Positions 19,828 through 53,698 of a DNA stretch of 64,000 nt are shown here, piece by piece. Position 1 is the stretch's first letter, and every line of letters starts with the position of its first letter. The position numbers were made by a program, and so were the translations under genes. The stretch covers positions 3,035,826-3,099,825 of the forward strand of contig BDGG01000002.1 in the NCBI GenBank assembly GCA_001949185.1. Reading direction: 5' to 3'. A model generated the notes under the pieces. That model ran no database searches. It was not told where the DNA came from and saw only the letters and a program-made list of their open reading frames with translations. Origin of the DNA: Ramazzottius varieornatus (Eukaryota; Animalia; Tardigrada).

Positions 19828-20026
19828 CACGCACGACGCGAAATTATGGGGCCAGTAAAAATTATGGGACCAGGCCTTTTCGCTACGGCGGTACGGAACG
19901 ACGTACGTACGCGACTGATTCACAGCAATACACTTTTGGACACTTTTCTACGTTTGAATTTGATTTTTGCCGTCTTTCCTTTCGGAGATGCATCCGTCCT
20001 AACGCCATAATTTCCCGTCGTGCGTG
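19828..20026. mobile_element. Tc1/mariner-type MITE (same family as 57715-57885)
   Basis: TIR CACGCACGACG.GAAATTATGG with TA on the right flank; body matches the copy at 57.7 kb in inverse orientation. Confidence 0.8.
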
Positions 20027-34144: not shown

Positions 34145-35710
34145 TGTGGCTGCGGGAGTCGACAGCAGCGGGACAACTGGTCCATCGTCCTTGGAGGAAC
34201 CAACCGTGTATTCCTTGTGGAAAACCGCGGAATGGATAATGCTACGCGTGCTAGAACGTACTGGTCTGGCAACGTATTATTCATGTTCGAATTATACTTT
34301 TCCCACATCCGCGAATTGTAATGATGGAGCTCTTGAAAGAAGCGGGATCGGTAGGTGATTTATTGTTCGCAATAAATTACCTACCTTTGGTTGTACTCGG
34401 TGTTCACAAGTCCTGTTTTGGCATCGAAAACTAGCTTTAAAACCGCTGCTACGACGAATTTTTTAAGGGTAATTTCGCCATAAAAGTGCTCGCTTAGAGA
34501 TTTGTTCGCACATGTGAAAATAGATGCTCTAAAAATATCTCTAACCAACGCACGCAAATCGAACGCGTTTTTTTAAATTTCTTCAACGAATCAAACTTTG
34601 TACTAACTTAGTTATACCCTTCCGAAACGCGCCCGACACCCTTCCCCAACGTTTCCTTTCGATTAAGCGACGAAAATGTGAAGTTTATTTCCAACTCAAT
34701 CAATCACAATGCCTCGCATCAAGCAGCGCTGGTTAGGTAGACCTCTAAGGGCTGGATATAAGATGGATGAAGTTCCCTAAGCAATCAGTGTGGAGCTGAT
34801 GATTTACAGGACGTTCAAAGTTCGTGGTTCGCAACGGAGGTGAAATTTCGAAGGCGTTGGCTTTTCAAGTAGGGCTCTAAAAGGGCAGAGCCTGCTACTC
34901 TGCTGACCTCAAACTTACGTTGCGATCTTGCGCTGACTGAGTTCCGTAAATTATCTCCCTCAAGATGTTATCCCAAGCCATCATATTTAATCAACGGGTA
35001 GCCTGGGAGCTAACGATTCTTTTGTCTTTCGGGACACAATAGTTAGTCAGACTAACCAATTAACCGAGAAATTATAGGCCAGGCGGTAAAAACGGCAACA
35101 TGGAAATTCAAACGCAGAGAAGCGTGGACAAGTTTGTTACTGTGAATCGGTCGCTTACGTACGTGCTTCTGTACCGCCATATCGTAAAGGCCTGGTCTAT
35201 AATTTTTACTGACCCATAATTTCTCGTTGTGTGTGCACTGAAGTGTTGATTGGGTGGCGAACTGCAACACCGCGGTGACAAAACCTCTAAGTGGCTCCCA
35301 CCTGCAGAGGATCAACTAAATCCAAGTCACGAGTTCCAGGAATCAAGTGCGGGGAAACGTAGTAGAATGCTAGCTTTAATCGTTACGATGGGTCTCCCCC
35401 ACCGGAAGTCACACTAGTCAAATTCTTCAAGCTGCTGTTCAATATTATAGAACTGATCATGGTTCAACCGAAACAGCTTGAAACGTTGTATGAATAGTGT
35501 GGAAGAACAGACATGCACTGGCAAGAACGCAACTTTGGAAGACCGTCGTCAACTGTGCCCGAAATTCTGTGTTCACAACAGTGCGTAGTCTGTGCAGTAG
35601 ACATGAATTCCGCGTTCGAAGATGGCACTGGACAGCATACAGGAAAGTGTAAACTTTTCTTTAGCGTCTCTGCGCTTATTTATCAGTAGCTCATCAAATG
35701 CCTTATTATA

Positions 35711-38719: not shown

Positions 38720-39955
38720 CTAAACTGTTAAGACCGAGCCAGGAATTATCGACCCGGTCGCAGCCTTGCAACGACGATCTACCATCTTGGATTTGCCCCA
38801 TCCAACAAAGTCCCATTGGTTCGTACAGATTTCCACGATGTTCTTCGCGACGAACACAAACGTGTTCCCGGTATGCTGGTTTTTGGTCCACATGTAGATG
38901 CGTATCACAAGAAAAGGCACATTCTCTCCAAAGACATTAATAAATTGTTGCAGCATGCTCCAGAACATCTTCATTTGTTGATCGGCAAAGTTCGTCGTGC
39001 TCAGCTGATACAGTCCCAGCGTCGGTATGATCAGCTGAATCGAGACCAGTGCCAATATGGCGTTCCTCACATATACATTCAGTTTTTGATCCGGACTATG
39101 ATCGAACAGAAAGTATAGCATCTCAACCGAGTCGATAATATCCATCAGCGCTTGGTTCTGCATATAATTGATGACCAAACGTTGGTTCGCTCTTTTCTTC
39201 GGGACTTTTCGATGGCTGACCAAAACGAGCCCAAAGACGCCGGCGGTCGCGACAAATGCCAGCTCCAACATGTTCGTACCGAACAGTAATCGTTCGTTCA
39301 GCTCGTCTCCGAATGTGAGAAATATCACAAGCATTTTCGACGTTAGAATGATTGAGTAGAAGGCCCAGCTGACGTATGACAAAGGTAAGGCGCCCAGGTT
39401 GTACTTCCGTCTAAAGTGGCCGATCTGCAGAAGGGCGGCATGCTTCTGAGCTCTTCGTCTGACCCTGCAGATGTCGCACTCGTCCAGTCCACTCAATTCG
39501 GGTTCTTCGATAGTATAGTCGTTCTTTATTCTTTGCGTGACAGTGCTTTTCGCAGAAGAGACCGCGTCATCGTTCAGCTCGGTTTTGAAAGGCTTGGTCA
39601 CTCCATTGGGATAGTCCCCCGCCCTCTGTCTTGCATCATGTGCTTGCAATATACCGCTCGGCGGGCGAGGATAATCGTGATCCAGACGCAAAACTGCATC
39701 TTCGAAATGGTCGATCGGGGAATGCTGTATAACGGCTTGGACCACAAACTGTTGCAAATGCTCAAAATAAGTGTCCGCCAAGAGGTATGAAGCAATGAAC
39801 AAGGCAACAACTAGAGCATCTGCCACAATCCATCCGACAACAGTTGTCCCGCCGTAGTAGCCCAGATACCAGTCAAGGATCCCTCCCTGCGTGATAACCA
39901 AAATCACACTCACTGCTCGAACCAAAAACGTTGAAAACTTGTATGTGAACGCCAT
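38720..39955 (-). CDS. TMEM121/CECR6-family multi-pass membrane protein, intronless, 411 aa
   Basis: QGGILDWYL, WIVAD, LGALPLSYVSWAFYS..L.SK, FGTNML, DIIDSVEML, NVPFLVIRIYMW, FVAKNI; multiple hydrophobic helices. Confidence 0.8.
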   Translation of the reverse strand: MAFTYKFSTFLVRAVSVILVITQGGILDWYLGYYGGTTVVGWIVADALVVALFIASYLLADTYFEHLQQFVVQAVIQHSPIDHFEDAVLRLDHDYPRPPSGILQAHDARQRAGDYPNGVTKPFKTELNDDAVSSAKSTVTQRIKNDYTIEEPELSGLDECDICRVRRRAQKHAALLQIGHFRRKYNLGALPLSYVSWAFYSIILTSKMLVIFLTFGDELNERLLFGTNMLELAFVATAGVFGLVLVSHRKVPKKRANQRLVINYMQNQALMDIIDSVEMLYFLFDHSPDQKLNVYVRNAILALVSIQLIIPTLGLYQLSTTNFADQQMKMFWSMLQQFINVFGENVPFLVIRIYMWTKNQHTGNTFVFVAKNIVEICTNQWDFVGWGKSKMVDRRCKAATGSIIPGSVLTV

Positions 39956-41200: not shown

Positions 41201-42272
41201 GCTGCTAGTAATCACAAGACCAAAGGCGACACTGTTTTTCCTTCCAGAAAGGGTTCGATAACCGCAATTCAAAACCGTCTGGTGATATATATAGTTCAGT
41301 GGGTCCGGCTCTACATACTGTACATGGTGACCAGCAAAATTTTCTTGATAACTTTTATAGTTTTCGAGATATAAAATTACGACGTTGGACCCGGAAGCAG
41401 CCTTTCTGTCGAATTAAAATTCAACCAAAAATAGACGAACGATCGGAAAAGTAATCAAGAACCCTTTCTCGAGCGAAGACAGTTGTGATTACAAAGTGTC
41501 GACACAATCGCCACCGTCTGCGACCGCGACCGTCTGCAGTTTCTGAGAAATCAACCTCCAAAGTGAGTTGCTCTGCCAGTTTTTGAAATTGCTCAATGAG
41601 CATTGCAGGTCACCGTCCGAAAAAACTATCACTTTATAGGCGAGGTTGTCATCTACAACTTCGATTTCGATGGGCTCTTGACCAGACGCACGAGTCAACG
41701 TTAAATGATGTAAAACCGAAATCGTGCTTGTGGCTCCATAGCTATGAGCACTGATTTGGTCTGGAGAAGTGGACAACATGACGTCACACAGGAGAACTGA
41801 TACATCACGGACAGATGGTCTTGTATGCTGAGCCGGGCGATTCAAAAGTCCACAGTACTTTCTCCGCGGGTGCATGCGCGGAAAAACTCCATGCGCGGCG
41901 AAATACTTTTTCCGCGTATCCACCCGCGGACTATGACAAGAGTTTCCCCGCGGGTGTACGCGCGGTGAAACCCCTTCTTTCCGCGCATGGATGCGCGGAG
42001 AACTGACTTTATCCGCGGGTGGATGCGCGGAGAAATGTGTTACTCCGCGGGCAGAAGTGCAGCAAGGAATTTACGGTTCGGTGTATAGAATTTGCGGTTC
42101 CGCCAGTCGAAGAACGGAGCGGACTAGCGATACCAGTGCGGATCCGTTACAACATGCGAAGGCGGATCCTGAGGAAAAAACAGCATTTTCGCAGCGGATA
42201 TCTTTTCGCTGTTCCATCAAATCATTTTGAATTTTCATCAGCGTCTTCCTTCAGACAGTCCATCCTTCTTCC

Positions 42273-44829
42273 ATGGATTTCGAGGTGCCTTCTTCCAGTC
42301 TTTCAGGTGTGCCGACAGCTGAAAGCCGAGGTGTTCGCAAGAAGGCCGTCTGCGATGGCTGTCAGTCGTTCAAAGCCTCCACGGAGAAAGCTGACATCTG
42401 TGTCTGCGGTCACGGCGATAACTATCACGAAGTTGTAAGTCTTATCTTCTTTCCAAAGCTGACGTTCCATTTGTGTTCACAGATCCGGCAAGCCCCAACC
42501 CCGAGTTCTGTTGTTCGCCCCGTGTATTCTCTGATAAACAGGTCACTGCAGAATGGAGAACTTCGGCGAACATTCCGGTCCAATCGGTTCCCTTCGCTCC
42601 AGTCACCCTCTCGTCCAGCTCGCGCAGCGGATCGTTCCTCTTCCCGTGCGCGCAACGCGTCGCTGCCCCCCAAGCGGGCGACCACCGATTGACGAGATGA
42701 CGTCGCGTGTACTCTGTGTCTTGAAGTGAATATGCCGAGGCTGGTCAACAGAAGCTACGCTTGGTAAGCTAGTCTGTTGTTCGCTGACCATCCGAAAGCG
42801 CATCTTTGAAGTTTTCAGATGTTTGACTAGGTATTCAAAGATGGTGGAGCAGGGATTCATTCGGGGACGTCACGTTCAGAGAAAAAGAACCGGTTCGGGA
42901 CGTTATCGATAGATCGTTTCCCCAGGTGGCTGGTCACTGGCACATTTATAAAGCAGATACGGCACATCATCTCTTTCCTGTGGTAATTCCGTCTAGCGAT
43001 TTGACGTTCGAGTTCTTTCGAAGGTAAGTTTCATTGATGCCTAGGTTTTTGGTTCTTGGGTTAGTTCGTTATTTTGTCCATTTCAGTGTTGTGGAGAGAA
43101 ACAAGAAGACTCGGCGTTTGTACCTTGGACCGACTGAGAAAAACTCGGTTCTTGCTACTTGACGATCCATCTGGTCCGAATGACTCCGCAGATAGCCTTA
43201 AGGCTTCGGAAGTTGTCCAAGATGTTGGAGCGGCAGGTAAAACAGTTACCAACACTCTGAAGCAGACTGGAGAAGTTAAGTGCTTGAATTCAGCTCTGTT
43301 TGCAGTTGTAGAAGTTGGACCGGCTCCACAGACTACAGCCAAGGTCACCTCAGTTCGGGACGCTCAACCAACTCGACGAGACATTGCTCTTCCGTCTACG
43401 CCGAGCACAAGCCATCAGTACGAGGTCGATCTGGTTTCTGTCCAAGAAGAATTTGACCTACAAGATGAAGCCGAGCCGGATGCGCTGAAACCAGTCATGC
43501 AGGCCTTCCAAGTTCGAGCTCGACAAGGCGTGGCTGGTCCTCGTATTGTTCATCATCTGGACCTGAACACAGGGGAAGACATTATGACTGTCTTCATCAA
43601 GTTCGTGAACGACAAATATCATGATCTTCGTGTGAAGCCGGATGTTATATTTGGAGAGTAAGATAAAACCATACAGTCGAAGATTCGCCACCCTAATTCC
43701 ATGTATTTTGTTTGTGTTCGCAGTGCGGTGGACGCCGGAGGACCTTTCCGCTGCGCAATAATGCAGCTTTGGGAGCAAGTTTTGCTAACGCATGATGGAC
43801 TCGGTCCGTTCTTTGATGGAGATGTCCGAAAGTCCGTAGCCATTCCTACCTCGTTTGCTAGAGCAGAGTTCTATGTCGCAGTTGGGAAGCTACTGTGCCT
43901 ATGTGTTGTTCACGATGGTGCTTTTCCATGCGATCTGGCTCGTTCAGTTTTTCGCTACCTGGTAGGTGAGAAGCTAGTGGAGGAGGAAGTGGGTTTATTC
44001 GATCCACACTCGGCCGTGGTCATTGACTTGGTAAGACGGCTCCGAACAACTCCAATATCCCTTCAGAAATTCCCAAACTTGCACGATGGATGGAAGACAG
44101 GATGAATGTGCAAGTACGTGCTCTGATTTCCATCTTACATTGTTTAGTTCGACCAACAATGCACCGTGACGTGTTGTAGGCTTCAGTCTGGAAAGAGCAC
44201 ACCAAGAAGGCCATGGTGAAGAAGATCGTCAGCTTTATCGTTATCTGACCGACGCATGACAAACTTGATTTTGCTGAGACAAGGATTCTGTCAGCACGGT
44301 ATGATTGAGGTGAGCGAAACAAACTTATTCAGTGAGGACCGAGATTAATTTCGGTTTTGCGTTGCAGTTGATCAAAGAAGATAAGGTTTTTACGGAACTG
44401 GAGGAAAGCCTCCACAGTATTGTGGTGACTTCCGAGGAGTTCCTCCGTGAGGTTGTCGCACCTCCACTAAATAGCAGGAAGGAGATCATCGCGTATTCGT
44501 TCTTCAAACGCTATGTAGAAGAGTCACTCCAACCGAACTGCAGACTTTGTTTGCGTTCATCGTCGGTTTCGTCAGAATCCCACCGAAAGAAAAGATTATC
44601 GTGAGAGAACTCATAACGCCAGGATCATCAAGTACAGTTGACAATCGACGCCGGTTTTTATCTTCAGATCCATCTAGAGGAACGCGCGGACAAGACCTTG
44701 CCGAAATCTGCAACTTCTGGCCCTCTGCTCACGTTGAACGCTCAGTACAACAACACGGAGCACAAAGAGTTTTCTAAAGATTTAGAACGTTCGATCGGGC
44801 TGTGTGGTAAAACTTTTACTGACTCTTGA
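42273..44829 (+). pseudogene. Multi-exon HECT-domain (G2E3-like) E3 ligase-like gene with N-terminal Cys/His finger
   Basis: CDGCQSF...CVCGHGDNYH; AVDAGGPF; FYVAVGKLLCLCVVHDGAFP..LARSVFRYL; FAFIVGFVRIPP; LPKSATSGPLLTL...EFSKDLERSI..GKTF* at the C-terminus; in-frame stops and frameshifts. Confidence 0.75.
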
Positions 44830-46550
44830 GGATTGTCTTTCGAGTGGGATTTTCACATCTTTCAGCCATCTTTCAGGCATATTTCTGACATCTTTACCAC
44901 GGTAAAGTATGATGAATTGAGCCTACGGTACGGTTCAACATTCCGAAGAACTTGATGTCATAAACCGCCAGTTCCAAGCGAAATGATCTGGACGCATTTT
45001 CATATGGAGATACCCATTCAGCTTTTTGCTTCAGGTTTAGCCTCCGTAAAATGAGCTTGAGCTCTGCCGAAATCCTGCCCCGTATCATCTTCTGGTTTCG
45101 CAGGCAGAAAACAGGTTCAAAGGAATAACCGACAGTACAAGGGATTTGTGGTAACCTCGCGACTCGGGTGTGTTTCACGTTAAAGGAGAAGTACATGCAG
45201 CAGCACTTTCGGTGGGCAGTTCAATCAATACTAATCAGAAATCAAAAGCCCTGCAACTGACCACAATCAAACGCAATCAAAAGCCCTTCATGTGGTCCGA
45301 TCAACCATCAAATTCGAACAGTGGCGTAGCTTTACTGTTTAGCACCTATGACGTATCAACACGTGATGTTGACCGATAAAGCAAGTCGTTAGGTGATTGA
45401 GACCTTTGTACAATACCATCAGTTCAACCCTCCGTCACCGTCCTAAACAGGTTTCACAGTCGCGCCCAACCGAAGTACGTCGCGCTTTTCTGACTCGTTC
45501 GATCTTCTCACAAACTTCTTCTATCCCACGCACTGAAGCGCAGCGCGTCTTACCTCGACCTGGACCGAGAATCTACGGATCTGTGTTGGACTACAGTTAT
45601 CATGGCAAGTTACTGTACATGGTTGGTGTTGTAGCCAACTCTGTGTAAATGTGCTTTGCAGCTTTCCCGGATCTACCATTTCGATCCCCAGAATTTCGTC
45701 GATGGACGCAATCGGCTGAAACAAGATCGTTACTTTGATTCCAAGAAGGATGGCATAATTCAGCAGTCAAACAGTTTGCTCCGTTGAAGGTCTTCGAGAA
45801 GGACGGGTCGTTTACGGTAAGTAAAACGTTATGAACTTGCCCAAGCCGTTCCGCTGGTTTCTTTGCAGATCTCTGCCAATTCCAACCTTCTTCTCAGTCA
45901 TCTTTACCCCACGTTGAGCAAAAACGTTCGACAAGCTAAGTACAAGACTCATGAGATCGGTAAAATACGACCCCCTGGGGGAGAATTTCGCCCCCTAAGT
46001 GGGGGGATCGACAGAACTCGACGAGATCTATCGAACTGCATCAGCCGTTTTTGCAATGGGGACCTTTATTCCAGGGGTAATAAAGCGTAAGAACAGAGCT
46101 GGAGCTCGCTTTGCTCGCCTCCAGCTCTGTTCTTACGCGTGCTAGGCCTGCGCGCACGCTACCCCCACCTAGCCGCTCGTTAACCCCAACCCCCACCATG
46201 ACCACTGCGAGAGACCGCTACCCACCCCCCCCACCAACCCCAAACAACCACCAATCAACCGCAAGATTACACCGCATATCAAAATTAATCGAACCAGCCT
46301 TAGTAGTCACATTTTCTTACTTGAGGCACATCAAGAAAACAACAAGAGATTCCAATGCAGAACAAAAACAGGAAGATTAGTATCTAATCTTCCTCAGGCA
46401 AAATCCAGTCACAGTCACAATCATTTCTATCTGAATGAGCGTCGCTAACACAAAACTTTTTCCACATCTGCTGGTACTCCCAGTAAACAGAATGAAACTG
46501 ACTGTTCTGAAGAAGAGTTTTACTGTTACCAACAACAGAAACATGGCGCA

Positions 46551-47787
46551 TCACTGTCGGACGTCGGCGAAAGCAGCAGAACCCGATTTGTTGCGATGGT
46601 AGATGTACTCCTCCAGAGCCAGCCAGACGCGGTTGTAGACGTAACCGTTGTGCTTGCGAAGAAACGTCTTCAGTGCCGAGTTGACCCCTTCGACCTTGTT
46701 CGACGAGATGAACTGCAAAAGAAAAGCAAACAGATAGAAATCACGGAAAAGTAAGAAAACAACAAAATGAAGGGTAAGAAAAGAAAACTGACCTCTTGAT
46801 CGTCGTAGCGAACAAACTCTCCTTCTGAGTGATTGACCTAGTCGTGCTCGGAGTCGCCCCACTTCGCAATTTGACGGTAAACAGCGGCTCCGTCGGTATG
46901 CGCGATGGAACCAGGAAGGACATGTTCGACGAAGATCTTCCTGATCGTCTCTTGGTTGGCGCGGATGATGTGCTAGACGACGATCCGTCCGGAGTCCTTC
47001 TCGCGCAGGATCAGGAGCATCACCTTGACGCTGGACTTGTCGCCAGTATCCGGATCGGGCATGTGAAGTCCTCGGGAACGGTCACCACGCCGGTACTTCT
47101 ACTTCGTTCCTATGAAAACCTGCGAGTACAAAAACACGTCAGACTCAAATCTTACACTTGATTGCAGACAGCAGAAAGCGAACCCGAGTGACGTGCAACT
47201 GAGGGACGGTCTCTTCTAGAAGTACTGCGGAGACACGTATCAATGCAGGGAGTCAAACGGCCTTCACAATCAACTGTCCATCAACCAAGCAGATATTTCG
47301 AGAAAATCCAAAATCCATATACGAGAAACGAGCAGTGTAAAAGAGTACTTGCCTCGTCGATGTAGACAATCCGTCCTGGCCCTCCGAGTTGGATCAGCTG
47401 GTTCCGGTTGTGGACAGTGAGCTTCACGGATCCAGACAGCCCGCTGCGACACGGTGTTCTTGTCCAGATGAAGCTGTCTGCGATGGCTCGTNNNNNNNNN
47501 NNNNNNNNNNNNNNNNNNNNNNNNNNNNNNNNNNNNNNNNNAGCAGCGACGAAATTCCCTCCCGAGCACTGGACTTCCACCCGACACAGGCCAACTGCTT
47601 GAAGGAAGCTCCGTACCGACGCGTCCTGGGCTTGCTGAGCGGTGAGACCGGTACCGTTGCGAGCGACGATGGCTAACGCAGTCTTCGTTCCGAGGGACCG
47701 ATGGTTGGCGAAGCGATGAACGAGGTTCCGTTGGCTGAATCCGAGAGGGAGACTGACGACGTGGATCAGCTCAAGGAGAGGCTCCAT
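46551..47787 (-). mobile_element. Merlin/IS1595-family transposase, intron-containing, with in-frame stops; spans an N gap
   Basis: QLGGPGRIVYIDE, KYRRG, VLPGSIAHTDGAAVY, VNHSEGEFV, SNKVEGVNSALK, LEEYIYHRN. Confidence 0.9.
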
Positions 47788-48099
47788 GGTCCAGCACTAC
47801 CTGAAAAAGAGAAAAGCGCCTTCCCGAACACCTAGTAGCCACTACCTGGGTCGTCGTTCCAGCGCAAAAACGTTAAGCCGTTATGTGAACTGTTCTAGTC
47901 GAACATTCCGCAAAATTCTTGCATATATTGTCAACAGACAATAATGCAAGAATCATGATGTTGTGTAGTGAGTTTTGAAATTGACAGCGCCAATTTTTCT
48001 TAATTAGAACACTTAATTAACGTTGCGGTCACCAGCCTTTACCAGGGGATGTCACTGTTGCAAAAACGGCTGATGCAGTTCGATAGATCTCGTCGAGAG

Positions 48100-48530
48100 A
48101 AATCTTTTTTCCATGGTCACACATGAAGCGACGGTGCCACTTCTCACTGAAGATCGTACCAATACCTGTCAAGAAACGCAGACCTTGTCTCACTGAAAAT
48201 TTGTCAGGAATAAAACAAAAATAAACCTTTGCCAGAGCCCATTTCATCCACGAAAGAACGCAGATCATGCTTGTTCATGGGAAATCCGCTATTTTCAAAG
48301 GCCATCAGCATGTCCACCAGTAGAGCCTCTTCTGTCTTGTCCAGCTTCGTTGGTCGGCCCTGCTTCTGAGCCATCGGTGATCTTTCATACCTAACGATAG
48401 TCATGCAAGGAACACCAAACGTGAGCGAAGCTTTCCGCACTGTCATCCCGTTGGCCACTGCGCGAACTGCATACTTCAGGCTTTCCTCCGTGTACTTTCG
48501 GCGATTGTTGCTCTTGAAACCTTCCGACAT
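48100..48530 (-). mobile_element. pogo/CENP-B-type transposase N-terminal fragment (psq HTH)
   Basis: RRKYTEESLKYAVRAVANGMTVRKASLTFGVP..TI, GRPTKL..EE, GFP, W..RF; truncated at ~48100. Confidence 0.8.
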
Positions 48531-49893
48531 TTTCCAGTTACTCCAGATCCGTAAGTCGAGATTGAAAGACGGATTTACGAAGGAATACATGTACGTGTAG
48601 AGAAGGACGAATGACACTGGCCATTGAAAAGTGAATTGCGGAATGTTCAATTGTGACGTCACACAACCAGTTTCTGTATCGATGTAATATTCTTTGCGTT
48701 AAATTGCCGCCACTCCTACTCCCCACATGTTTGCCCATCCCCACAACTAGGCCAGGTAAGCGTACTTCACGAAGAATGGCGGAGAAGCTGTGACGAGGTC
48801 CAGCTACACTACTACCTCGATGGAACTCCGTCGAGACTTGGCTCTAGCGACACAACCGAGTCAGACAGGTACGGTACATTAAATTCTACTCTATGAAAAT
48901 CGCGGAAAGGTTGATACATCTTTCTCCTGTTTGAAGGCTGTATGTGTCGTGCGTTCCTGATGGAGTGAGAATGTACTACTCGGACATTGCTGGTGCTTCT
49001 TCCCACCCGGCCTCGCCCATCGCCAGTGGAGGAACAACCGTATACTCCAGCGTTCTTTCTCAGTACAACAGGCAGAGTGTTCCGCCAGGCAAGTCAATAG
49101 AAGACCTTCGGAAGGTTCCTCTTTACTTCGGAAGGTTCCCCTTTACTTATTTCCGAGGCGTGGCCTCGGACCAACATGTTCGGAGCTTCATCCCGCTCAG
49201 CTTACCTCAAGGCAGTAAGCTGATCATTCTTTTACTCACAATTTTGTTGTGCCTGTCTTGCTAGACAAACAGTGCGAGTTTCCTTCACAAGAATCATCCA
49301 GGAGAACCAGGAAACTCATGGCGATCAATTAAGAAGCAGTATCGGCGATTCGGTCGTGTTGTGCGACAAGCAGAAACAAGTAAGGGCAGTTCAGGGATAC
49401 TGGGAATACTTGGGAACTCCGGTTTGATAGTTAAGTAGCAGGTCAAGTCTTCCTCGTTTGTTGAACTGGATTATCTTCTTTTCAGGAAGAACCAACCTGA
49501 TGACATTGTCCTGAATTTCGGCCAGATTAAGGCCGATGCTGCTGGTGTAGATACTTTCCGATGAGAACCTCATGTCCTCGTCTGTTTTTTTTTCCTTTTC
49601 CGATCTTTGATTCGAATCTTTAGCTTTTTGGTATTTTCCGAATCTTCACGTCTCCTGTATAATTCAGTGTTTTTGTATCCTCGAACTTATTACTTGCTGC
49701 ATTTGCCCTTTTTTCTTTTTTTTGCTAACATCAGTCAAACTGGACGTGAAAGTTGTGGTACTGTAATTGCCGAACAAGACGATAAAATATTGCGGATGGT
49801 CGAATACAAACGTTAAGCTAAAACCGTTTCGAATTGCGATGCATCAGCTAAGTTACAAAAGGTGGTAAAATTAAAAATCTAGAGACTGTTAAA

Positions 49894-50250
49894 CTATGCC
49901 AAGCTATCGATCAAAGAATCGCGCATCTTTGTCGCGATGTTAGACGGCTGATGTCCCTCGGTAAGGCGGACGACGGACTCCATAATTGAGATTTTCTATA
50001 ACAGAAAGCTATCCAGTCGTTAACGATCATTCCACCTCCGATCACATCGCTGCCACGATTCACGGTTCTAGCCTGAAAAATATGACCCGGAAAATTAACC
50101 AAGTAAGCCAGGAAGTCGTGTATGGGATCTCGGTAACTGAATTCACCCAAAGTGTTTCCAACTGGCACCCGCTCTTAGCCCATGTCGATGAAAACATGCG
50201 CCACTTTTGACCACGAGTGGTACTTGAAGCAGTGAAGAAAGCTCATCTTG
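49894..50250 (-). pseudogene. eIF6: eIF6 C-terminal fragment (two exons, frameshifted)
   Basis: QDELSSLLQVPLV / intron / ARTVNRGSDVIGGGMIVNDWIAFC ... MESVVRL..QPSNIATKMRDSLIDSLA*. Confidence 0.9.
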
Positions 50251-50271
50251 TCAGAGAACTTGATGTGCTTA

Positions 50272-51058
50272 CCGAGGTGGCTTTCCTTCGAGGCCACGTC
50301 GACCCTCCATCTGAAGCATGACTTTGACCACGTCCATTGGGTTCGCCAGGAACTGACTTGGACCTCCGCAACTCAATCCTTACATCACTGCTTACATGCA
50401 ACAGAATAAGGTCAGGTTTGCACGACGCATCGACACAAACAAATGCGAGACGAACCGGAAGTAAGGATATCACATACCATAAGGCAATGGAGTCCTTGGA
50501 GTCCGCATGAAACACAATCTCGCGACCTTTCTCGTAAAGCGTCGCGAGAACCGCTGTATACTACGATACAAGAGCTGCTTTGCACCTTGTTACGCTCTTT
50601 CTCGGATCATCTCCAAATGCATAAGACCATATCTGCATGTCGTGCTGAGGCAGGTGACAGTCCGTACCATAGCTTGAAGAACCCTTCTTCCTCCACCACG
50701 AAACAAACTCAGTTCAAGATATCTGTCCACGTATAATTCGCCCGAACACCCACCTATCCCGATCGCGTTTTTCATCAGTCCGCGATAAGACTAATTTCTT
50801 TTGATGGACGCTGGCGCGCAACACCGCGCTCGCCTTGAATCTGCAGCCATGTCTTCGCCTGTTCCAACGGGTAAGTGACTAAAAAATTCCAACGAAAAAT
50901 AAGAAGAGGACATTCGCCATGATTTGCTCCACTGGAAACATAGCTAAGACTCCGATGAAATTGTGCTGAATTCAGCAACGAAGGCACTAAGGCTGGACAG
51001 ACGTATTTGAGCACCAGTCTGTCATCTCCGGTTGCTTGACGAACCACAGTAGTGTCAT
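50272..51058 (-). pseudogene. UCP4: Mitochondrial uncoupling protein 4-like (SLC25A27) N-terminal fragment, several exons
   Basis: [81 protein letters not shown]. Confidence 0.85.
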
Positions 51059-51817
51059 GTGAAGCGGAGGGTCTCGCGAAGTTCAGCGCTTCCTCGCCGC
51101 ACTTTCGCTCCCTGAGCTGGCTCCGTCGAAGAACGTGGAAAGTTGAGGGACCATTTTCGTGATAGATCCCGTCCGACAGAATTACTTAACGAGGGTGCGC
51201 TTGCCATGTCCTGCAAGGTAAAACAGCGTCAGCCAATGTCTGGAGGCATGCACATACCACGAACGAGCACTGATGAAACACGCCTCCTTTATCACAACTT
51301 TCAGGTGATCGTCTTCAACTTCAAATACCTTCAGGAGAGAAAAGGAGCATCTGCAAACGAACTAGCGTTAATTAAGAGAACCACCGGAAGTGCTAATCAG
51401 CTTGCTTCGCGTATCAGTACCATCCAGCGCTCGATGTCCAGTTTCGGTCCCTCGCCCTAGTGCTGACGTACAGACAAGTATTTCTCCAAACAATCTGAAT
51501 TCACCGACTTGGGGAAGAAATTAACGACGGTGGAAGTCCACGGGAGAATCACACCGGACCGGATCAAAACGCACTGTAAGTACGTCAGATGATCACCACT
51601 TCCGGTTGGTAACCAATCAAGAACCAATCAAAAGCCCTTCATCCGGAACAATCAAAAATCAAGCGCCCTGCACTCAAAAATCAACAATGAAAAGCCCGGT
51701 GAGGTTCCCCTGTTGTCAGCTTCTGAATTGAAAGGTGTTTCAGGATTAAGCACTTTACTTCCTTTATCCTGTTTGAACCAAGCCAGAAGGCGTCGAGCCA
51801 GAAAAACAGAATACAAC

Positions 51818-52761
51818 TCAAACATCCGCAACATGGCTGTACACAAAATCTAGTACACTAAAGTAGGTTTCAATGCCATGATTTCCGTCATCCAGAATCG
51901 GGTTAACAGATTGTACCAGCAACGCATAGCTGTCAGCAGAAATCGGACATTTCATTACTGGAACTTCAACATGAGGGTTATCCAGCTCTTGATCGTCTTG
52001 ATCTTCCGCAGACGGTCCCTCGAAATCCACACCGTACTGTTCCAGATTCTGCACATCGATGTCCATCCCTCTGACGCCGTTGGTTATCATTCCCGCAACG
52101 AAGACTTGTCTCGGCGACTCGGCTCCTTGCGTTCTCAAGCCGTGGCAATTCTAGCTGTAAAAGAACTTAATTTTAGGAATATACGCCATAAACTTAAGCA
52201 AACTGGCAGAATCAAGGATACCTCTCGAGAAACTCTTTCAGGCCTTGTTTAATTCGTGGAAGGAAGACGTACTGCAAACTGAAAACCTGCAAAGAGTTCT
52301 TCGCGTCCAAATAACCTTCGTTTTCTCGTCGGATAAATAGACTACGGTACTGATTTGAGACGACTCTTGTTACATCTCTCCAGAGACGTTTAATTCGCTG
52401 GTTATCTACAGACTTCCCTGCAATGAAACTGCCACGGTTCAAACCACGCAAGGCCCACATCATACGCGCCTATGGCACCATTCACTTCCACAACCGCTAC
52501 TGGATGATCCACGTCTTCTGGGAAAGCTTGAAGAGCGGTCTCGACGCGATCAAGTGGTTCCGAAGCCCTTTCAGCAATTCTTTCAGCCACGACCGCATCA
52601 ACGTTGATTTGGATGACGGGAACGATTTCTCCAATACGCTGAAGCCGATCAACCTCGAGTAGCATTCCATCTTCGTCATTTGCAGATGTCATCAAGATCC
52701 GCACTGCCCTGTCGAAAGTCTGCTGAGCGAACGAAATAAGATCCTCAAACTGATTCTCCAT
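51818..52761 (-). pseudogene. IS3-like eukaryotic DDE integrase-core transposase, internally deleted
   Basis: RGLNRGSFIAGKSVDNQRIKRLWRDV...LF...E.EGYLD...LQYVFLPRI, LRTQGAESPRQ, YGVDFEGP, NPILDDGNHGI. The N-terminal exon jumps directly into the core, so the first two acidic catalytic motifs are missing. Confidence 0.85.
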
Positions 52762-53698
52762 CTTCAAGAGACGGTAGCCCAAGAAGACATATTTGAAATC
52801 ACTTCGAACAGAAACGGAAAACGTTCTCGTACTCATTATTTGCGGCGCAGCACTGCCTTATCCTCTGCCGCTGGAATTTTACTACGCTCCGAAGAACAGT
52901 ATCCGCCATCCCGTGTGATTATGACGTTCCTGTTCAAGCGGCGGTATAGCACACCGAAGGACAAATTCTGTACCGCACTTCTGCCCGCGGAGTAACACAT
53001 TTCTCCGCGCATCCACCCGCGGACAAAGTCAGTTTGTCCGCGCATACACCCGCGGACTCATACATTTCTCCGCGCATCCATGCGCGGAAAAAGGGGTGTA
53101 CGCGCGGTGAAACTCTTGTCGTTCGATAGTATTTCAACACGCGCATATGGACACTCGCTCAATGGGAAGTATGGAACCCGTCCATCTACTGTATGCCAGC
53201 GTTATGGTGGATGCGAAGCCAGAGCTGCATTTTGAAATCAGGTTTTGCGGTACTTTCGGTATTTTTTCTAGACAGTACTTTACCGGTGGTATTACCCGTG
53301 AATCTTGCCGAATAACGATACTTTACCTGCGAGGCGGGCCGAAATACTTTACTTTGCTAAGTATGGACCAGACAGTACTTGTTCAACACTGGTCAGAGTG
53401 AAACAATACTATCTCCAGTGTGTTCACTGCAATACAGGCTTCTGTACAGGCTCGTTGGATACACTGGAGAAGTCCATCCCTACAATCAAGCATAGAAAGA
53501 CAAGCTAGATTTTGATTGTTGCTCGGGGAGTATTTTTTCTGTTGATCGTGATTTAGCTCTTGATTGACTAAGGAGAAATTTTAGAACGAGATCCGCCGCT
53601 GAATTTGGACACCATTGGTTGACTGGAAATTTTGTGCCAACACCCACTTCTGATGAGGTGAACACACTAGAGGCAGTATTGTTTCACTCTGCCTCAGT

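Follow-up and report, generated by a model that had tools for sequence, protein, structure and literature searches.

DNA transposons are known to encode enzymes that take part in ubiquitin and SUMO de-conjugation, and fungal ones also carry demethylation enzymes. Ulp1 domains are found in MULE and CACTA elements, and OTU or Ulp1 domains in Ginger1; these de-conjugating cysteine proteases are often fused to the transposase or encoded beside it. Published IS3EU elements have TA..TA or TAYGG..CCRTA ends and a 6-bp target site duplication (TSD) (PMC10045372, PMC12730594), while GingerRoot elements have a 6-bp TSD and terminal inverted repeats (TIRs) of 100-150 bp (PMC6839031). The passenger enzyme of fungal IS3EU elements is thought to counter host silencing (PMC12730594). 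No mention of a HECT gene, or of any ubiquitin-pathway gene, in IS3EU or GingerRoot was found in a search of published papers.

How does a tardigrade locus compare with these systems? The DNA analysed here (the window) is a stretch of 64,000 nucleotides from Ramazzottius varieornatus. Positions 41824 to ~53135 very probably represent a single decayed insertion, ~11.3 kb long, of a two-gene IS3EU/GingerRoot DNA transposon. The features of the insertion are as follows.

41818..41823, unstranded: presumed left half of the TSD, GTCTTG, the 6 bp beside the left terminus (the family makes 6-bp TSDs)
41824..42084, plus strand: left arm (TIR), with terminus TATGCTGAGCCGGGCG... followed by five CCGCG-N8-CGCGG palindromes
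42085..42272, plus strand: subterminal region and 5' UTR of the left gene, common to the copy on contig C6 up to 42298
42273..42434, plus strand: first coding exon of the HECT-like gene, with Cys/His motif CDGCQSFK...C.CGH....H and a GT donor at 42435
42830-43021, 43085-43232, 43302-43657, 43724-44113, 44180-44307, 44366-44600 and 44668-44998, plus strand: HECT-like exons defined by RNA, partly annotated as RvY_04476
44868..45017, unstranded: short dispersed repeat of ~150 bp, which makes the 3' end of the HECT transcript
45959..48098, unstranded: nested 2.1 kb transposon with 47-nt TIRs (46017-46063 and 48051-48097), containing an assembly gap at 47492-47541
48096..48766, minus strand: dispersed-repeat fragment encoding an HTH_psq domain
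48762..51546, unstranded: chimeric duplicate of a host locus on contig C3, 80-91% identity
51818..52836, minus strand: integrase remnant (N-terminal region 52477-52836; rva_4 positions 79-163 at 52218-52472; C-terminal region 51818-52138)
52951..53135, minus strand: right arm (TIR), with at least three CCGCG-N8-CGCGG palindromes, its outer part and terminus gone

The CCGCG-N8-CGCGG palindrome occurs eight times in the window, where 0.02 occurrences are expected, and every occurrence lies inside one of the two arms. These palindromes are likely to be the binding sites of the integrase. The left arm is ~260 bp long and the truncated right arm ~185 bp; the stretches 42001-42084 and 52951-53034 are 89% complementary, and further overlapping pairs exist. 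The inverted repeats of CCGCG/CGCGG units described in the first-pass annotation, which placed the element at 41851-53147, are therefore real, but the left terminus lies at 41824 and there is no clean tip at 53147. Right-arm homology ends near 53120-53147, the outer ~60-110 bp including the terminus are absent, and pattern searches and local alignment against shuffled sequences found no right terminus in the window. As the right arm is truncated, the end of the element is put at ~53135.

Nine complete MITEs of 215-572 bp, relatives of the element, have a common tip, TATGGTGAGCCGGGCG, and each carries 3-11 CCGCG-N8-CGCGG motifs. Eight of the nine are flanked by a perfect 6-bp TSD, and in the ninth five of the six positions match. 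The family tip reads TATGGTGAGCC... and the left tip in the window TATGCTGAGCC..., in agreement with TA..TA (TAYGG..CCRTA) ends. At the right arm, the integrase remnant (52212-52463, minus strand) matches Pfam rva_4 (PF24764) with 83.6 bits (cut-off 26, E 2e-23), at profile positions 82-163 only. With its rva_4/DDE integrase, TATGG terminus, long TIRs and 6-bp TSDs, the last scored on the MITE relatives, the element belongs to IS3EU/GingerRoot; an IS3EU-type element was what the first-pass annotation suggested. The proposed layout also holds: the HECT-like gene reads inward from the left arm and the integrase inward from the right, so that the two converge.

Later insertions account for ~5.7 kb of the element interior, close to the ~6 kb first estimated. 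In the chimera at 48762-51546, the 3' end of eIF6 and the DNA downstream of it are fused, in inverted orientation, with the 5' part of a gene for a UCP-like mitochondrial carrier; the parent locus is still present on C3. To either side of the N gap (47492-47541) the sequence runs collinear with that of three other copies of the nested transposon, which hold 155-166 bp in place of the gap. The flanks are thus continuous, and the gap probably has a true length of ~160 bp and is crossed by neither gene.

The HECT-like gene is a transcribed pseudogene. Its ATG (42273) follows the inner end of the left repeat by 189 bp, near the ~180 bp first given. An RNA-run contig covers 42061-42211, in the subterminal region and 5' UTR, and a single RNA contig joins seven exons through six GT..AG introns of 58-69 nt, which bears out the prediction of a spliced gene. 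RNA and DNA contigs show no differences from the assembly. The reading frame contains at least four breaks and a stop (43132-43359; 44036-44180, with a TGA at 44103; 44227-44241; and ~44527), and the frame of the spliced mRNA stays open only over stretches of 300, 110 and 95 aa. A further frame change, near 44610-44650, is explained by the intron at 44601-44667 in the RNA contig; the other four stand. At the position of the HECT catalytic Cys (~44716) the window has Ser (LPKSATSGP vs LPAAKSCTP in P0124, a Hypsibius exemplaris relative). No other copy of the gene was found in the R. varieornatus genome.

Is the left gene a HECT gene at all? The exons were searched singly, the joined exons serving only to count open frames. 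The window exon at 43701-44105 scores 17.8 bits on Pfam HECT (PF00632) and RvY_04476 scores 20.1 bits, both under the cut-off of 23.9. By contrast, the full-length H. exemplaris relatives P0124 and P0125, the only sequence relatives of the window gene, pass with 31.9 and 40.2 bits. The two intact HECT genes of H. exemplaris, BV898_03862 and BV898_02104, are annotated as plain genes. The zinc finger of the first-pass annotation survives as a Cys/His motif (CDGCQxFK..C.C.H....H, 42351-42431), which is common to residues 33-60 of P0124 (E 6e-9) but matches no Pfam family. An ESM Atlas model of P0124 residues 380-744 reaches a TM of 0.77 to HECT clusters, a PDB sequence search with P0124 gave marginal HECT matches (E 0.03-1), and AlphaFold2 with a 5-row alignment gave a P0124 model too poor to use (mean pLDDT 36.5). 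A synteny query with the flanking 411-aa PF14997 gene was uninformative, as it returned no H. exemplaris locus tag.

The 55.8 Mb assembly contains no more than two integrase remnants, one in the window copy and one in the copy on C6, and no autonomous copy with an intact DDE triad was found there. The window copy has lost ~550 bp containing the integrase HTH and the first two catalytic Asp, and has Lys for Glu (NQRIKRLW vs NQRIERLW in relatives). The C6 remnant scores 100.5 bits on rva_4 and lacks the second half, so that the two are complementary: C6 corresponds to residues 2-166 of the relatives (WHID, GGIDGFSR) and the window to residues 179-258. These integrase relatives are widespread in animals. 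C6, with arms ~22% diverged, is the only other long copy, and of the HECT gene it keeps only the start: the 5' UTR and ~25 bp of the ORF are in common, while tblastn found no HECT remnant. The middle of C6 consists of ~600 bp of unique sequence and a nested abundant MITE.

Is the gene pair found in other DNA, as a linkage test of the two-gene proposal would predict? Eighty integrase-centred metagenome loci were gathered by integrase alignment. A HECT-like ORF lies near the integrase at 25 of the 80 by HMM and at 14 by tblastn. Seventeen of 18 downstream HECT matches are on the strand opposite to the integrase, and among the 31 loci having at least 3 kb downstream, 13 show a convergent HECT 0.5-2.4 kb past the integrase core. 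At many integrase loci HECT is absent within 10 kb. Many unrelated eukaryotic contigs thus contain the gene pair, and two elements with both genes inside have defined boundaries. L093 has the TSD CCAGGC/CCAGGC and TATGG..CCATA ends, which enclose an rva_4 integrase match and a HECT C-lobe; L076 is bounded by TIRs whose 71-nt tips are 99% complementary. The two-gene reading is therefore supported by loci in metagenome DNA, including the TSD-flanked L093, and not by the R. varieornatus genome alone.

The pairing is old. At four loci (L070, L048, L061 and L094) both ORFs are intact, and integrases just 65-70% identical retain HECT partners that are 40-44% identical. Because the pairing is old and is found inside TSD-flanked units, the ligase was probably selected for the benefit of the element. 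Pfam HECT is passed by the transposon-linked ORFs of L070 (30.3 bits), L061 (26.6), L067 (28.4), L076 (37.2) and L093 (36.5), and the catalytic Cys is kept in transposon-linked ORFs (RRPISHTC, PTASTC) and in P0124 and P0125.

Are the tardigrade and transposon-linked HECTs related? Their identity is low, 25-35%, but the two profiles match with 96.6% probability (E 6e-10, 252 columns). The mid domains gave no significant match between transposon-linked and tardigrade proteins (E 0.12), the cnidarian-like L070 HECT as a single query found nothing in the tardigrade genome, and a metagenome scan with the HECT protein alignment gave pattern matches with no confirmed relative. The tardigrade integrase falls in a clade (SH-aLRT 89) containing AT-rich loci, and the same loci are the best HECT matches. 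Profile similarity, shared architecture and these congruent nearest relatives together suggest common descent of the tardigrade HECT and the transposon-linked family.

Could the HECT-like gene instead be a host gene at its native locus, with two independent IS3EU fragments inserted beside it, one upstream consisting of a left end, the other ~8 kb downstream consisting of a right end with the integrase? The right terminus is absent and thus no TSD can be checked to prove that the 11.3 kb is one insertion; the region is also full of unrelated insertions, the gene is single copy, and in H. exemplaris the annotation treats its only close relatives as plain genes. On this explanation, however, one of only two integrase remnants in 55.8 Mb has come to lie, correctly inverted, at a distance of 11 kb from a solo left end, and the 5' UTR and start of a host gene fall within element sequence common to C6. 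The convergent layout is moreover repeated at many loci, some of them TSD-flanked. A native gene is already disfavoured and is most improbable.

An origin of the gene by capture has to be weighed on similar evidence. GingerRoot captures intron-containing pieces of host genes (PMC6839031), the same element holds the eIF6/UCP-like chimera with its parent locus extant on C3, and the introns of the HECT gene are host-like, being short and GT..AG. The tardigrade element might then have taken up an entire host HECT gene as DNA, in a one-off Pack-type event independent of other IS3EU HECTs, with the parental gene lost later. Yet published captures are fragments and not whole genes, and the genome contains no parental HECT copy. 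The gene abuts the arm and converges with the integrase, just as HECT genes do in elements elsewhere, and the loci closest to it in HECT sequence are also those closest in integrase sequence. C6, for all the divergence of its arms, keeps the same gene start. A one-off capture is thus unlikely, and a single two-gene insertion is the preferred reading.

How would such a two-gene element work? In working relatives, the DDE integrase, consisting of an HTH and an rva_4 core, presumably binds the palindromic subterminal repeat arrays in arms of ~165-260 bp, and would cut at the TATGG tips and insert via a 6-bp staggered cut. The second gene, reading from the opposite arm and usually convergent with the integrase, encodes a HECT-type E3 ubiquitin ligase made up of four parts: N-terminal region, mid domain, acidic linker, and a HECT domain that bears the catalytic Cys. 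This ligase may ubiquitinate the integrase of the element itself or, alternatively, a host factor that holds the element in check. The role first proposed for it, to degrade or decoy host silencing factors or to regulate the transposase, is speculative. The window copy is dead, in keeping with the first description of it as defective: the right tip and the first half of the integrase are gone, and a presumed catalytic Glu is Lys. Its middle is filled by at least four later insertions and the duplicated chimera of host gene fragments. Transcription of its HECT pseudogene from the left arm persists, and the transcript is spliced, but no ligase can be made from it any more.

With a HECT ligase encoded by a transposon, the enzymes known from DNA transposons would come to include a conjugating one; many viruses use such a conjugating strategy against host restriction. 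It can be proposed, tentatively, that a broad IS3EU/GingerRoot lineage in several eukaryotic lineages encodes its own, undescribed HECT E3 ligase, needed for transposition or boosting it, as it might do if it tagged the integrase or a host restriction factor to be degraded. If so, many multi-copy 'HECT domain-containing' or 'G2E3-like' genes of fish, molluscs and cnidarians would be transposon genes. RvY_04476 is reclassified by the present analysis as a transposon-derived pseudogene, and the two intact H. exemplaris HECT genes, possibly with large 'HECT-like' families in other animals, become candidate transposon genes. HECT also becomes a second marker gene for IS3EU annotation, and the identity of the protein ubiquitinated by a transposon-borne ligase becomes a testable question.

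The element resembles IS3EU/GingerRoot (PMC6839031; Kojima 2023, PMC10045372) in its rva_4-type DDE integrase, related to IS3/IS481 and Ginger, its 6-bp TSD, TAYGG..CCRTA tips, TIRs of at least 100 bp, MITE derivatives and captured host gene fragments. It differs from published members in its arms, which are arrays of an 18-bp palindrome, and in its tardigrade host. Fungal IS3EU elements with alpha-kinase and TET/JBP dioxygenase genes (PMC12730594) likewise have a transposase and a second enzyme gene opposed at the two ends, and share the multi-gene build, TAYGG..CCRTA tips and 6-bp TSD. In contrast to these, the second gene here codes for a HECT E3 ligase rather than a kinase or dioxygenase, and the hosts are animals or eukaryotes represented by metagenome contigs. 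The ESM Atlas clusters nearest to the tardigrade and transposon-linked HECTs are chordate and mollusc 'HECT domain-containing' and 'G2/M phase-specific E3 ubiquitin-protein ligase-like' proteins (language-model features 0.93-0.97, predicted-structure TM 0.67-0.77). They are of similar length (350-490 aa), some have a UBX-like domain, and they are annotated as host genes; that they are IS3EU genes is a lead only. Like the transposons bearing Ulp1 or OTU, the element is a DNA transposon with an accessory enzyme of a ubiquitin-like modification system; unlike those proteases, this enzyme is a ligase of the conjugating HECT type and has a gene of its own, which in most cases converges with that of the integrase.

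The inverted repeats of CCGCG/CGCGG units described in the first-pass annotation were recovered by an inverted-repeat search of the window, which gave 89% complementarity between the arms at 42001-42084 and 52951-53034. The repeat unit of the arms is an 18-bp palindrome, CCGCG-N8-CGCGG, with five occurrences in the left arm and three in the right (8 observed in the window against 0.02 expected), and several staggered inverted-repeat pairs were obtained because the arms are internally repetitive. A genome-wide search with the repeats, proposed at the outset as a check on termini and target-site duplications, gave more than 40 matches to the left arm across the 55.8 Mb Ramazzottius varieornatus assembly, many as close plus/minus pairs. 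When the copies are lined up, the family tip is TATGGTGAGCCGGGCGATTC and the left terminus falls at 41824; the repeat from which the element had been started, at 41851, is real, but its exact end was misplaced. Nine short copies are complete, at 215-572 bp and with 3-11 palindromes apiece, and the 6-bp target-site duplication is perfect in eight of them and 5/6 in the other. IS3EU/GingerRoot elements are defined by TA..TA or TAYGG..CCRTA tips and 6-bp duplications (PMC10045372, PMC12730594, PMC6839031). The original assignment to the IS3EU type is borne out by the family tips, the duplications, and the match of the integrase to the Pfam profile rva_4 (PF24764). The right arm of the window element is without its outer part: no second terminus was found in the window, and alignment of this arm past ~53147 is no better than against shuffled sequence.

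An integrase-core gene had been placed at the right end, and rva_4 indeed matches at 52212-52463(-) with 83.6 bits, over profile positions 82-163 only. The one other integrase remnant in the assembly lies inside the copy on contig C6 (L024 2763-5440, 2.68 kb), which has both tips and a 5/6 duplication. The C6 integrase retains the HTH and two Asp motifs, the first (WHIDSNHKL) and the second (GGIDGFSR), and stops at residue 166 of its relatives, while the window integrase begins at their residue 179 and reads NQRIKRLW against NQRIERLW in eight relatives. No autonomous copy was found in the 55.8 Mb assembly; relatives of the integrase are common in fish, echinoderms, molluscs, and cnidarians. 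An abundant MITE of ~415 bp (at least 40 copies, 86-90% identity) is nested in the C6 copy at L024 3766-4183, and short pieces of it lie at window 19828-19896 and 35186-35238.

Is the left gene intact? The window, on contig C2, encodes GAU92391.1 (RvY_04476, annotated 'HECT domain-containing protein'). The ATG at 42273 lies 189 bp inward of the inner end of the left repeat, near the ~180 bp first estimated, and the gene is spliced, as had been proposed: one 1,783-nt contig from a public RNA-type run spans seven exons (42830-44998) with six introns, all GT..AG and 58-69 nt long. Other RNA contigs cover 42277-42509 and, from a different run, 42061-42211 within the arm region; there are zero differences between the assembly and the RNA/DNA contigs over the gene. 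The message has no long frame, and the open pieces, counted on joined exons, are 300, 110, and 95 aa. In an exon-by-exon comparison with the intact H. exemplaris HECT-like proteins P0124 and P0125, its nearest relatives, the homologous frame shifts at 43132-43359, 44036-44180 (which includes a TGA at 44103), 44227-44241, and ~44527, and Ser stands at the catalytic Cys position. The left gene is a transcribed, spliced pseudogene, of which RvY_04476, annotated at 192 aa, models only a part. The copy had been called defective, and it is so in its partial integrase with NQRIKRLW, its frame-broken HECT-like gene, and its incomplete right arm.

One RNA contig uses a different GT..AG junction (42303-42480) that drops 176 nt, including the coding part of a Cys/His motif, and another keeps a 48-nt intron (42435-42482). 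Pieces of the locus also occur at 99% identity or more in runs X9, X10, X12, and X15 of one 2022 study, labelled as four other organisms; these may be mislabelled samples, mixed samples, or very close relatives.

The earlier identification of the left gene as HECT-like finds support in its homologues; the window exon alone scores 17.8 bits on Pfam HECT (PF00632), below the cut-off of 23.9. An exhaustive HMMER search across 1.8 billion proteins gave eight matches only; the genuine ones comprise the annotated RvY_04476, H. exemplaris proteins of 744 and 756 aa, and a pair of fragments from read assemblies. The two H. exemplaris genes are BV898_03862 (OQV22366.1) and BV898_02104 (OQV24154.1). Their products each exceed the Pfam HECT cut-off and retain the Cys, and P0124 shares the Cys/His motif of the first exon (E 6e-9). 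The ESM Atlas model of P0124 380-744 reached a TM of 0.77 against HECT clusters; the AlphaFold2 model of this protein was too poor for use.

Does the integrase/HECT pairing occur in other DNA? The HECT-like gene is single copy in the R. varieornatus genome, and the C6 copy has in common with it only the 5' UTR and ~25 bp of ORF; therefore, 80 metagenome-contig loci around integrase relatives were examined. The tardigrade HECT proteins matched 10 of the 80 loci, the addition of one transposon-linked HECT as query raised this to 14, and an HMM from seven HECT sequences to 25. The linkage that the first-pass annotation had suggested looking for is thus present in these metagenome loci, and mostly convergent when the HECT is downstream: it lies on the opposite strand in 17 of 18 such matches, and a convergent HECT is found 0.5-2.4 kb past the integrase core in 13 of the 31 loci that have 3 kb or more of downstream sequence.

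One of these loci, L070, is a contig of 5.5 kb that ends in inverted repeats and has subterminal repeat arrays; its complete HTH + rva_4 gene scores 273.9 bits and converges with a HECT ORF of 507 aa (30.3 bits, RRPISHTC). L048, L061, and L094 are laid out alike, their ORFs also intact, yet the relationship is old: the integrases are 65-70% identical and the HECTs 40-44%. A multi-copy family in one assembly (98-99% identity) has TIRs of ~165 bp, with 71 nt 99% complementary, and TATGG..CCATA tips. Between the halves of a perfect duplication (CCAGGC/CCAGGC), its copy L093 carries an integrase and, converging on it, a HECT gene of several exons (C-lobe 36.5-37.2 bits). The first reading would have been undercut if other repeat-bounded copies never held the HECT gene; L093, in other DNA, is bounded by TIRs and a target-site duplication and holds both genes. 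Among near-identical copies, the 6-bp flank CAGGTC occurs left of L076 and right of L078, and GCTGGT right of L076 and left of L072; this pairing across different contigs suggests assembly switching or recombination between copies. In the AT-rich loci L033, L034, L038, L050, L053, L056, L065, and L069 (~26% GC), the HECT lies on the upstream side of the integrase, oriented in tandem or divergently. L053 has two HECT-like genes.

The transposon-linked HECTs match the tardigrade profile in profile-profile comparison with 96.6% probability (E 6e-10). In the integrase tree, 13 of the 14 loci by then linked to a HECT lie in the same half as the tardigrade fragment, which itself falls in a clade of SH-aLRT 89 that includes the AT-rich loci; these AT-rich loci are also the best matches of the tardigrade HECT proteins and of the window's own exon. 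At 38720-39955(-), 1.9 kb to the left of the element, is a 411-aa transmembrane gene without introns (Pfam PF14997). It is 68% identical to its best relative, an ordinary-orthologue yardstick against 25-35% for the HECT gene.

The interior had been described as swollen by insertions, and repeats and a duplicate were mapped between 44868 and 51546:

44868-45017, short repeat with copies in the assembly
45959-48098, nested 2.1 kb transposon with 47-nt TIRs and copies in the assembly
48096-48766(-), dispersed repeat encoding HTH_psq, at least 15 copies at 70-91% identity
48762-51546, chimeric duplicate of a C3 host locus, 80-91% identity

Three full copies of the nested transposon sit on C13, C7, and C2:3409344-3410721, the one on C2 being 99-100% identical, alongside many short derivatives; none of its ORFs matched a Pfam family. 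The N gap at 47492-47541 lies within the nested transposon, where three other copies carry 155-166 bp. Both sides of the gap are collinear with these copies; therefore, the flanks are continuous and the integrase and HECT-like genes unaffected. ORFs listed across the Ns are artefacts. The HTH_psq domain makes the dispersed repeat a probable fragment of a pogo/Tigger-like element. In the chimeric duplicate, the eIF6 3' end and its downstream DNA adjoin, in inverted orientation, the 5' portion of a UCP-like mitochondrial-carrier gene. Its parent, two neighbouring host genes at G000:C3:1833500-1843000 (L028 1970-3811 and 6470-7762), has four short stretches (58-150 bp) that the duplicate is without. 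The duplicate may have been taken up by the IS3EU element as a Pack-type capture, or it may have arrived later by segmental insertion.

We regard the window element, with high confidence, as a copy, now dead, of an IS3EU/GingerRoot element with two genes, whose HECT protein in working relatives may act as a ligase on a host factor that restrains the element or on the integrase. Alternatively, this element may have captured a host HECT gene in a one-off event, independently of the HECT genes in other IS3EU elements. This is improbable because the integrase/HECT architecture recurs in other loci and the gene start lies within element sequence common to C6; in addition, a parental copy is absent, with no cellular HECT gene matched by P0124 in the R. 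varieornatus genome. The same recurrence and the same shared gene start make it more improbable still that a host gene merely sits between two unrelated IS3EU fragments.

How does a two-gene integrase/HECT element compare with known systems? The literature search returned no paper with both IS3EU and HECT, and ubiquitin enzymes are unmentioned in the GingerRoot/IS3EU literature found; Repbase and Dfam, which lay outside the search, may list the pairing. The nearest described design is that of fungal IS3EU elements with an alpha-kinase, oppositely oriented, and a TET/JBP gene (PMC12730594).
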